Assembly (NCBI GenBank): GCA_964057225.1
Contig: OZ059898.1
Span: 5,332,001-5,396,000 of the forward strand
Length of the DNA: 64,000 bases
Direction: 5' to 3'
Origin: Auanema rhodensis
Lineage: Eukaryota; Animalia; Nematoda
The notes under the pieces are model-generated. The model worked only from the letters and a program-made list of their open reading frames with translations. It was not told the DNA's origin and ran no database searches. Shown piece after piece: positions 4,720 through 11,152 of this stretch. Numbering within the stretch: position 1 is the stretch's first letter; every line of letters begins with the position of its first letter. Position numbers and translations under genes: made by a program.

Positions 4720-7700
4720 ACTGAGATACTCGACAATTAACTGTATCATTTTATATTCAATAATTGTTCTTCCACGGGTATTCGAGGCTCCATCATTCTT
4801 ATAATTTGTTCACGTGTAATTGTAATGATAAACCGGTTTTATATTTTCTTGTGTGAAAATTATTTTCAATGAAATATCTTTATGTTAAAAGAACAAGCCG
4901 AGTATGAGTTTCTACTAGAGACAAGATTACTCTTGCTCCAACCACAAAACTTTAAAAGTCGGGTCATCGCAATTTATTTCATTTTTTCTTTAGCTGCAAG
5001 TTCATGGTCGAATCAGTTTAAATTTATTTGCAATTGACGAATTCTACAATTACAATGTTGAGTTTCCCAAGCGGAAAAGAAATATTTATAGAGCTATAAG
5101 AATATAGTTGAAGAGGATTTAGTTATTCGTTTTTTCTTGTAGTTCTAGTAATTTCACCATGATCTGTTCATCTAGCATATTGATAAATTGAATTAGGAAC
5201 TCAAGTGATCTGAGTTCTTAAGTTAGTAGATTTTGAGCTAAGGATTTGCACATTGTATGAAGAGATAGGGCAGCTTTTCTAGAAGAAATGTTTCCGAAAA
5301 TTTCTCTTATCGTTTATCAAAAACATGAACCAGAATAAGAGTAATCTTAGTTTGAGTCATCCTAGAAGAGCAATGATATTTCTTCAATATTTTAATTTCA
5401 TAAAATGTATATTAGTTTTTGAATTTCAAAAAATATTTTAAAATAAAATAAAATAAAATATTTCTTTTATAATATTTCAGCTGTGTGTCCCATCTCAAAA
5501 AATAATTTCTGATATAGAAACGGTTACTTAAAAATGAAGACACGATGTATTGTATGACAAGTATACATAGGTTGTCGTCCTTCGATGATGTTCTCTTCTC
5601 CTTCACCTTGTAAGGGAAGTGAATGTTGAGAGGTGTAATTGCAGCGCAAACAAGTCAGTTATCGGCCTCGCTCACTTCAGTTGCCTGTAGAAACTCACAA
5701 GGCTTCATATTCTTACCACCTCACAACTCTCTCGTTTCTATTGATCCTTCTATCCCACCTTCTGTCCATCTATCCATACACGTCCTCTGTTCGTCGATCA
5801 TTCTTTTCTCCTCACTATACACACATACACGGCCATATAGGGCAACAATAGGCGCCGACCCTCATCTCATTCCTCTTCGTTCTTTTCTTCCTCCTTCTCT
5901 TTTTACATCGTCCTGTATGCTCTTGCAAACATCTTTCTGGCTGTCATCATCTTCCGTCTTCTTCACTCATTGGATTTCCATATCCAGAGTCTTCTTCATT
6001 TCAATGTCTTTCTACTCGTCTACATCAATTTCTTCTGCGAAATGGTTCGGCATTGTCTAGAAAAGTTGGATTCTTCCTCAACTATTTCTCGCGAACCACA
6101 TATTTATAATAAATCGATTATTGCTTTTGTAATATTCACCCAATTATTAAATTTTTCATTTTTTCAGATATATATTTTGAACCTTTGAATAATTCTTTGA
6201 TTTTGCTGAAAATAGTAAAATTAACTAGGCATTTTAGTTTTTCGGATTGAGTAAAATTTACTAAAAGGAATGCAGCCAAAACTATAGCAATGCGTATTTC
6301 AGAAAATGTTATATATGTGTATCGAAGACTAGAATACGATAAATAACTTGTTTGTTAAATCTGAATCTGAATATGCTGCTCACATTCCGAGTTAGTGAAC
6401 CACAATTGCCTTGATTATTTCATCGCTTCGAAGGATTAATGCTCATTTTTCTCTTTAATATGCGAAGAATTCATTTACGTTTCTCAAATTTATTGCAATC
6501 TTTTATGTAGTTTCTGAAGATACTTTGATCATAGTGAGACATAAATATCTATAAATGTCATATATAAAATGCAGGATGTAACTTTGGAGATTTTGAACGG
6601 GAAGCACTTAACAATTGTGAGCATTGTATGTGTTAAAAAGCATATTCAGATGAGATCATTCAAGAAAGAGGAGACAGACACACAAGAGGCACAGAGAGTC
6701 ACACCATCATCTATCTTTCTCTTTCTTCTGCCTTCCTCTTATGTGACCACACTAACTCCACATGTTCCATCTCTATGTCTCCTTTGTCTAGTTTTCTTGT
6801 TCATGTATGGTCAAACCTAAACGACATCCCAAGCAATGGCGAGGTCGGAACATATTTGACGGCGTCCTTGTGCTCGTTTTGATGTCATATTCACTGCCGT
6901 GTTTCATCAGAATGTCAGACTACAGACCTCAGTCGTAACTCTTACTTCGATTTTTCACAATTATATTGAAATTTCCTCCGCTGTGTTGAAATACATGATT
7001 GAGGCTAACAAGCAATATGAAAAATTATATTATAACAACCTTATTGCAAGAATAAAATCACCAATTAGTTTGTTACTAAAGTAATTTTTACTCTAAATAT
7101 AAGGTCCGTTATTTTAAAGGATTCATGAGAGACTAAGACAATAGTTCTTGGCTCTTTCAGCTTTTATGATACATCCAAATCCTCTTCATGTAATTTATTT
7201 TCTCTATATTTTCTTCTTCTTCCCTTTTTCCTTCTTGTCAACCATATTTCCTTTCTTATCCAGCATAGCCTTGATGCTTCACATGCTGGTATAGATGAAT
7301 GTTAGTTGGCCACGGGCCGTCTGCAGAGAGCCAGAGAAGGAAGGACAAAAGGGCGGAGAGAGCAATTACGCCCAGTCAGTCGACCACAGACAGCTATCCA
7401 GCCAAGAGTCTCTCTTTTACTCCGTGCCTTTCCTCAACAAGCTTTTCGTGGTCCGTATTCTCCGTCAATTCGCGTAATTCAATATCTGACTTTCGGTTTA
7501 GTTCTAAACTCGAATTCTTGAGTCTCAGTGTACAGCTTCTCGGCCTTATATGGTTCAATGCGCGCTTAACAGAATTCAGACCAACAACTAAATAGTTTAC
7601 AATAAGTACTGTACAACAAATATTTTATTGATAGTAACGCTAAAATTTACTTTTTAATCGAAATTCAAGAATAAAACTCTATTATTGAATGTTCAAGAAA

Positions 7701-8939
7701 TTGCAATTTTTTTTCGTTTTTTCCAGTTTAGTTTTGGTGCTTTGTTCAAACTGCGTGGAAATGCAAAAGGCCCGTTATTAAATATATGTCTCGTGCTACT
7801 CACAAAGAACTAAGCTTTCAGTTTCTCTCTTCTACTTTTATATTAGTATCCTTCGAGCATTTAAGGTTTTCTCTCTCTCGGACCCTCTTCGTCTCTTTTG
7901 ATCTTGTTTTACGAAACAAAGTCGTGAAAAATTGAAGAACGAGCGTTACTATTGCTCAGCTTTTGAAGCCCAGCAGCCGTCAACAAATCGACTAGCTTAG
8001 TTATGGTCTTCCGCCATCTTGAATAACCGCATGTAGTACGTTCTTGAAGGTTTAGTTCCTTCTTCTGTTGTAGTTTTTCTTCACAATTAATTCATTGAAA
8101 CTGAAATCATCACCAAACAACATAAGCAGCCGTTTTTGATGATTGGATAAAAAAATTCTATGACTAAGTCATGATTCATCTCCCGTAGTCAAGTTATTTT
8201 TCATTGCTTCTCGCTTTCAACATTTTGTTTTTCCTTCGACACCAATTGGCGCTACTTATATTTCTACTGTACATAAATTGAGAAGTATTAATTTTAAAGC
8301 ACTCAAGGTTTACCTAATATGCTTAATTAATACACGAAACAGCAGAACGTCATTAAATTGAAATGCTTCAGATCCCAGTGCCCATTTATGGTTCGAATGA
8401 CATTGATTGCTGCCCGGACGGCAGCTTACAAATAACAACGGCAGCGTCTGTCTCTCTCGGAGCTATCATATGCCGTTCCCTCTCTATTCACAAGGCTCTT
8501 TCTCCATTCCTTTTCTGTCATACAATCTAACAACTAGTTCATTGACTTGCAGATTCAGCATTTCTTATTAGTTATACGAGATGGCGAAGGTTAAGCATAA
8601 CGAAGTCGATCGTCCTCGTTACTACTTCATATGTCGACGTTTGACATTTAGTTGCCTATCTATCTTCTGCTCTCGTGAGCCATCGTCGACTTCTAATTAA
8701 GGGAGAATGAAGAGAAATAGAAGACTGAGTTGAAGATAAAGGAAATAAGAAAAAGAGAGAGAGAGAGCATGGAAGTTGAGAAAAGCAGAAAAGCCTCTAG
8801 AATGTAATTTAAGAGAATCAATTGTGAGACAAGTATTTTATAAGAGTATCTTCTTGAAAATCATACTTCCTTTCAATCTTCTAGCTTCGAATGAATTTCA
8901 TACAAAAAAGTAAGAGGATCAATTCATAATTGGTCCAGC

Positions 8940-9263
8940 AAGAGTCTCTGCTATCTCTCTTCCTCTCTTTCTCTTCTCGTGCCCCGCCTTTCATTCATTC
9001 AGCCCCTCCCCACTCTTTTCTTATATGGACATACATCAGGCTAAGCTGACTCAGGCCCCTCCCTCCCCACCGGCGAGCCCGGCAGCAGCTGCGGCAGCAG
9101 CGCCGGCACAGGAGCAACGGCTCAATAACTGCTTCGTCTCTACACCCTCGAAACCTGCTATTCTCTTAGGCCTTGTTCTACATACATTTTCGATTATTCA
9201 ATACAATTCGAACAATTCAAAAATTGAAACAAAATCAATTACTCATCAAAAAACAACAACGAG
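8940..9263 (+). promoter_or_regulatory. GC-rich promoter / first non-coding exon of the putative pri-miR-87 host transcript
   Basis: CT-rich and GC-box (GCCCCGCC) blocks and a GC island, then a donor GAG|GTTAGT at 9263/9264. A TTTCAG acceptor ending at 9473 brackets the hairpin. Confidence 0.45.
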
Positions 9264-9307
9264 GTTAGTTTAATCAAACCAAATAATGCAACCTTGGTTC
9301 CCATCTA

Positions 9308-9391
9308 TTCTCACCCTTCCACGCCTGGCACTTGACTCAAACCTTAGAAAAGGACAGGTGAGCAAGGGGTCAGGTGTAGAAGATATGAGAA
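9308..9391 (+). ncRNA. mir-87: miR-87-family pre-miRNA hairpin; predicted mature 3p arm GUGAGCAAGGGGUCAGGUGUAG at 9358-9379
   Basis: The 3p arm has the miR-87 5' end GTGAGCAA and 3' block TCAGGTGT (canonical, from recall: GTGAGCAAAGTTTCAGGTGTGC). The 5p arm ACGCCTGGCACTTGACTCAAACCT pairs with it and resembles miR-87-5p. A basal stem TTCTCA/TGAGAA extends the hairpin. Confidence 0.85.
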
Positions 9392-9820
9392 CTGACTAAC
9401 CACCAAATTCAAAAACTATAATTGATTTATAGATAGGATTAAGAACATTTTAAACGTAAAGGACATCTTTCAGTTTTAAACGGATCTGCTTGAAGTGCAC
9501 ATTTATCAATACTTGATACCACTGCGAAGTACTCGACGACACGAAAAATACCAACCAGATAGTAATGATAAAAATTTCGATGCAATGATACTAGAGTATT
9601 ACTGTGGCAAAAATTCACAGAAAAGAAACCAAACGATCTCCATTCATCTTTTTGATGGATCCGTGTATTTAATTTTATACATATTCAACATAGAAACATG
9701 AAATCACTACAAGAGTTTATCAGCATGATAATACACGTTAAGTTCACAAAGTGTTAAATTAAAAACAATCGACCACGATACATCAAAACATTGCTACAAA
9801 TATAAGAGCACGGGGAAAAT

Positions 9821-11152
<1,332 letters not shown>

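Follow-up and report, generated by a model that had tools for sequence, protein, structure and literature searches.

The closest described relatives of the locus reported here are the mir-87 genes of Haemonchus contortus and Brugia pahangi, whose precursors Winter et al. 2012 give in their supplement (PMC3282659). In Haemonchus, the star strand of hco-miR-87a is CCGCCTGAACCTTTCGTCTCAACCT and that of hco-miR-87b is CCGCCTGACACTTGACTCAAACCT, and the species also carries a mir-87c (PMC3282659). The published trio of hco-mir-87a, b and c agrees with the preliminary description of this DNA, which held that there are several mir-87 genes in some clade V nematodes. The mir-87b guide is well conserved. 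The guides of hco-miR-87b and bpa-miR-87b agree at 20 of 22 positions across clade V and clade III (Winter et al., PMC3282659), and Brugia (clade III) shares with Haemonchus (clade V) the duplication that separates mir-87a from mir-87b. Winter et al. 2012 (PMC3282659) class mir-87b as intergenic in the two genera. Expression of hco-miR-87b in Haemonchus is abundant, and it is among the most abundant miRNAs of the adult. Mutants of mir-87 in C. elegans show increased sensitivity to paraquat (PMC11003958).

A 180-Mb germline genome has been described in the A. rhodense preprint, in which non-coding RNA is annotated with Infernal/Rfam (10.64898/2026.08.27.747507). The window analysed here is a stretch of 64,000 nucleotides of Auanema rhodensis contig OZ059898.1, and it contains a hairpin that belongs to the mir-87 family. 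We put at roughly 0.85 the probability that this hairpin is a mir-87b gene, transcribed by RNA polymerase II from the plus strand and giving a 3p guide with the seed of miR-87a.

A mir-87-family hairpin beside ran-1

The hairpin, its arms and the neighbouring end of ran-1 are as follows.

9308-9391 (+): pri-/pre-miRNA hairpin of the mir-87b orthologue, from the minimum free energy fold and the match to Rfam RF00726
9321-9344 (+): 5p arm, predicted star strand, pairing with the 3p arm at a 2-nt offset
9358-9379 (+): 3p arm GTGAGCAAGGGGTCAGGTGTAG, predicted 22-nt guide GUGAGCAAGGGGUCAGGUGUAG, with the family seed and 3' block
9821-9913 (-): last coding exon of ran-1 with its stop codon (9821-9823), from translation

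The 84-nt hairpin folds at -35.6 kcal/mol, compared with -20.2 +/- 3.1 kcal/mol for dinucleotide shuffles of the same sequence (z -4.95, with 0 of 200 shuffles as good). For a version of 111 nt, in which the basal stem is longer, the value is -41.4 kcal/mol (z -4.05). Pairing between the arms extends over approximately 35 bp, including a basal stem of approximately 10 bp below the predicted Drosha cut. The 3p arm pairs with 9321-9344, the exceptions being single bulges and one 1x2 internal loop. The preliminary description had placed the hairpin and its 3p arm at these positions, and had held that a failure of the two arms to pair would speak against it. The sequence is as it claimed, the arms do pair in the predicted fold, and the stability is far above that of the shuffles.

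The mir-87 model of Rfam (RF00726) matches the hairpin over its full length (model positions 1-79) at 9314-9385 on the plus strand, with a score of 48.4 bits. The E value of this match is 8.9e-10 in a scan of 301 nt and 1.3e-7 over the whole 181-Mb genome, and RF00726 is the sole meaningful Rfam match in E-value mode. The gathering score of the model is 49 bits. The hairpin is 0.6 bits below this threshold, and in gathering mode Rfam returned no match anywhere in the window. A routine Infernal/Rfam pass thus misses the mir-87b locus by 0.6 bits, which is a practical blind spot. The seed block GTGAGCAA at 9358-9365 aligns to the GGUgAGCaA block of the model, and the 3p arm carries the family seed GUGAGCAA together with the 3' block UCAGGUGU. 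The hairpin had been described as a miR-87-family precursor that keeps the seed and the 3' block and has an altered centre, and the full-length Rfam match and the seed read at 9358-9365 bear this out. Both the guide sequence and the 5p arm occur once in the 181-Mb genome.

Two mir-87 genes in Auanema

The assembly that was scanned comprises 180.9 Mb in 112 contigs. Exactly two loci in 181 Mb fit the pattern GTGAGCAA-N5-CAGGTG in an exact scan. When the genome was scanned with the 5p motif and the seed, and the extra matches were folded, there were likewise just two genomic hairpins. One of them is the hairpin in the window, and the other is the canonical member of the family.

Contig C1:8716855-8716926 (+): canonical mir-87a gene, Rfam score 66.7 bits

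The C1 copy has the canonical GTGAGCAAAGTTTCAGGTG, and its guide is GTGAGCAAAGTTTCAGGTGTGC. The window copy is like the mir-87a and cel-mir-87 type (Rfam RF00726) in its seed, its 3' block and its single-copy hairpin, but differs from it in the 5p arm and the centre, with 48.4 bits compared with 66.7 for the C1 copy. The two Auanema loci are alike within the hairpin only, and the likeness ends at its borders, as expected from an old duplication. A mir-233-type relative was not found in the genome within 3 mismatches.

The star arms identify the two copies. In the window, 9322-9344 (CGCCTGGCACTTGACTCAAACCT) matches the star of hco-miR-87b at 22 of 23 positions, with one A-to-G change. It has no match to the star of hco-miR-87a within 3 mismatches, whereas the 5p arm of the C1 copy is identical to that star at 24 of 25 positions. 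On these matches, the window locus is the one-to-one orthologue of mir-87b, and the C1 copy that of mir-87a. The window hairpin is also like hco-mir-87b and bpa-mir-87b in its layout, its 3p guide and its seed, and the 3' block is identical to that of hco-miR-87b; the hco-mir-87b precursor was compared by short-pattern searches and by eye only. It is the star arm and the one-to-one count that support the orthology; the guide differs at four positions. Such orthology implies that the locus has been under purifying selection since its lineage parted from the strongylids.

Two other readings of the hairpin were rejected. A chance hairpin is ruled out by the z score, by the Rfam E value of 1e-7 and by the match of the star arm to hco-miR-87b. 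A new, lineage-specific paralogue was dropped in favour of mir-87b orthology, as the star arms of the window and C1 copies match different hco-mir-87 genes. The preliminary description had proposed an unannotated paralogue. A second family member beside the canonical mir-87, missed at the Rfam gathering score, does exist; it is not novel, however, as its star arm is that of mir-87b. The window mir-87b is likely unannotated, which would hold for any miRNA of this genome. A full-text literature search with the guide sequence returned no miRNA paper, and the matches to GUGAGCAAGG(G) in that search are presumably the start of the GFP coding sequence.

The locus adds one miRNA gene to a genome for whose genus, Auanema, a full-text search found no published miRNA catalogue. 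It also provides a clean case in which mir-87a and mir-87b orthology can be read from the star arm despite a drifted guide centre. The finding contains nothing surprising to specialists.

Predicted transcript and the putative host intron

We infer expression of mir-87b in Auanema, and with it the processing, the choice of the 3p arm and the overlap of targets that are set out here. An RNA polymerase II transcript of the plus strand, convergent with ran-1, would fold into the stem of approximately 35 bp. A cut by Drosha/Pasha approximately 11 bp up from the basal junction would be followed by Dicer cleavage, which would free a duplex of approximately 22 nt. Under the rules of strand selection, the strand with the weaker-paired 5' end is favoured as the guide. 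The 5' end of the 3p strand is the A/U-rich, loop-proximal end of the duplex, and because this is the weaker end, the 3p strand GUGAGCAAGGGGUCAGGUGUAG would be the one taken up by a miRNA Argonaute. The other members of the mir-87 family also have their guide on the 3p arm. The window guide has the same seed as miR-87a, which contig C1 encodes. The two are therefore predicted to repress a common set of seed-matched 3'UTR sites, with transcription of the window gene controlled separately. Given the paraquat phenotype in C. elegans and the abundance of hco-miR-87b, a second, separately controlled member that shares the seed is relevant to studies of mir-87 in Auanema.

The sequence around the hairpin contains motifs that resemble splice sites, as well as a candidate region for the start of the transcript.

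9264-9269 (+): donor-like motif GAG/GTTAGT, putative 5' splice site, by motif only
9467-9473 (+): acceptor-like motif CTTTCAG/, putative 3' splice site, by motif only
8900-9263 (+): C-rich and GC-rich island (8900-9130) with an A-rich tail, candidate promoter and first exon of a host RNA or of the pri-miRNA itself

The splice-like motifs had been noted in the preliminary description, which inferred a host transcript from them, and can be read in the sequence at the same sites, with the G of GAG/GTTAGT at 9264 and CTTTCAG ending at 9473. They are 210 nt apart, and the hairpin is 44 nt from the putative donor and 82 nt from the putative acceptor. The window hairpin thereby resembles intronic miRNAs in non-coding hosts in that it lies between a consensus-like donor and a nematode-type acceptor. 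It may differ in this respect from hco-mir-87b and bpa-mir-87b, which are intergenic. A mirtron was rejected, as the ends of the hairpin do not coincide with the putative splice sites. At these distances from them, Drosha cleavage would be needed.

The mir-87b precursor may be carried in a spliced intron of 210 nt (9264-9473) of a non-coding host or in an unspliced pri-miRNA, and the odds between the two are about even. The donor at 9264 is one of two AGGT[AT]AGT sites on the plus strand of the 64-kb window. In the interval 8300-9900, the TTTCAG of the acceptor is the only one on the plus strand, and the 9264 donor and 9473 acceptor are the only strong motifs in the right order. The frequency of chance bracketing was estimated for random 84-nt segments. 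With GT[AT]AGT and TTTCAG at the motif densities of the window, 0.13% of segments are bracketed at the observed reach and 1.1% at a reach of 150 nt. With loose motif definitions and a reach of 150 nt, the proportion rises to 6.5%. Once the post-hoc choice of motifs is allowed for, the bracketing gives moderate support to a putative host intron.

The strongest competitor keeps the same miRNA gene and places it in a stand-alone, unspliced intergenic pri-miRNA, so that the splice-like motifs are chance and there is no host RNA; we give it slightly less than an even chance. It has in its favour the intergenic position of mir-87b in both Haemonchus and Brugia and the 6.5% of random segments that are bracketed under loose definitions. 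Occurrences of GT[AT]AGT in the window, 35 and 33 on the two strands, are at or below the approximately 44 expected from base composition (hand calculation, 33% GC). In addition, a second exon beginning at 9474 would run antisense towards the ran-1 3'UTR. The low frequencies for the actual motifs, 0.13% to 1.1%, argue against such a transcript, as does the correctly ordered strong donor and acceptor pair, which has no second instance on the plus strand of 8300-9900.

Upstream of the putative donor, the island at 8900-9130 has a GC content of 52-55%, compared with 33% for the window, and includes a CAGCAGCTGCGGCAGCAGC repeat-like stretch. Together with its tail, to 9263, it may serve as promoter and first exon. 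The island was also considered as the site of a second miRNA or structured element, at 9045-9125, and this was rejected because the minus-strand stem is no better than shuffles (z +1.1). There is a donor-like AAG/GTAAGA at 8910, and by eye a pyrimidine tract ending in CAG at approximately 9002. The two could mark an intron of 93 nt upstream of a putative exon at 9003-9263. Initiator-like TCATTC motifs at 8991 and 8995 allow an alternative reading as a transcription start. A search near the locus found no Inr+DPE promoter module. A coding host was rejected, since the flanking open frames have no Pfam match; exact products of the flanking ORFs are not on record. Elsewhere in the window, the stretch at 5600-6100 (+) is pyrimidine-rich, with GC skew to -0.58 and AT skew of -0.35, and all three plus-strand frames stay open in it for 70-145 codons. 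Pfam gives no match, and the stretch looks non-coding.

The guide centre and the ran-1 neighbourhood

The guide in the window departs from that of hco-miR-87b (GTGAGCAAAGTCTCAGGTGTGG) by more than 3 mismatches: G replaces A at position 9, U at 11 and C at 12, and A replaces G at 21. No change is seen in the seed or at positions 13-20. The guide of the mir-87b group, GUGAGCAAAGUCUCAGGUGU, is thus not conserved in the window, where 4 of its 22 positions differ. The lineage-specific part of Auanema mir-87b is the guide centre alone. When the Haemonchus precursor is paired by hand, position 9 is bulged and position 12 is in a C.C mismatch. In the window hairpin, both of these positions form C-G pairs and a 1x2 loop takes up 10-11, and by the same hand pairing the number of pairs in the two stems is equal. 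The changes in the guide therefore appear to rearrange the central pairing and not to destroy it.

Other mir-87 hairpins bear on how unusual such a centre is. A metagenome scan with GTGAGCAA-N5-CAGGTG returned mostly bacterial chance matches and three real mir-87 hairpins from other animals.

L062:672-744 (+): metagenome mir-87-type hairpin, guide centre AAAGATT
L119:618-690 (-): metagenome mir-87-type hairpin, guide centre AAAATCT
L121:1034-1106 (-): metagenome mir-87-type hairpin, guide centre AAATCCT

None of the three has a G-rich centre. In them too the centre, positions 9-13, is the variable part of the family, which makes the changed centre in Auanema less surprising. Alignment with mir-87a-type hairpins gives two pairs in which both sides have changed. 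Compensatory double substitutions were rejected as proof of selection. The two pairs weigh little because the comparison is between paralogues, and mir-87a is the wrong comparator. Compared with mir-87b, the changes on the 3p arm re-pair the centre differently and are uncompensated.

The G changes at positions 9, 11 and 12 could mark a functional shift in a gene that has moved beside ran-1 and now depends on a spliced non-coding host for its expression from an intron, which we regard as unlikely. Such a shift might involve, for example, new targets, a different use of the arms or a change in how the centre pairs.

A further reading takes the locus as a decaying remnant of mir-87b that is no longer processed, with the G-rich guide as a sign of lost constraint. 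The guide, which as a rule is conserved, has four substitutions with a cluster of three at positions 9, 11 and 12; this would fit such a remnant, as would an Rfam score just under the gathering score. We consider it very unlikely, as the seed, the 3' block and 22 of the 23 positions of the star arm are intact, and the stem has as many pairs as the hand-paired Haemonchus precursor and a z score of -4.95. Random decay would have hit the star arm and the basal stem as well. Change per arm, at 4 of 22 positions in the guide and 1 of 23 in the star, is suggestive but not statistically significant by a rough hand estimate, and this too counts against decay.

A functional minus strand, as an antisense miRNA or as structure in a long ran-1 3'UTR or read-through transcript, can be dismissed as extremely improbable: ran-1 is transcribed from that strand, which folds at -33.9 kcal/mol (z -4.11) and has a weak match to RF00726 (25.6 bits, as expected for the mirror image of a good hairpin), but a good hairpin folds whichever strand is read, only the plus strand carries the family seed and matches both published arms, and the hairpin is at least 430 nt past the ran-1 stop and beyond the poly(A)-signal variants.

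The mir-87b gene in the window would thus be read from the plus strand towards ran-1. The preliminary description had the hairpin pointing towards the 3' end of ran-1, and this is correct, with the ran-1 stop on the minus strand approximately 430 nt away. Several poly(A)-signal variants are present at 9721-9673, between that stop and the hairpin. A mir-87-like hairpin downstream of ran-1 was found neither in Ancylostoma ceylanicum (10 kb) nor in Cooperia oncophora (6.5 kb), and in Teladorsagia the contig consists mostly of N. The hookworm and Cooperia thus do not share the position of the window hairpin beside the ran-1 3' end.

The 360 proteins returned by the protein searches include no Auanema-like Ran or RIB-2, and the nearest Ran and RIB-2 proteins found are strongylid. 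The C-terminus of the window ran-1 matched none of the 360. In ran-1 (window 9821-10720, minus strand), an intron directly follows ...MPAIAPPEV that is absent from the ORF-level Ran matches of other nematodes. In the window, ran-1 and dkc-1 are arranged head to head, as they are in Ancylostoma ceylanicum.
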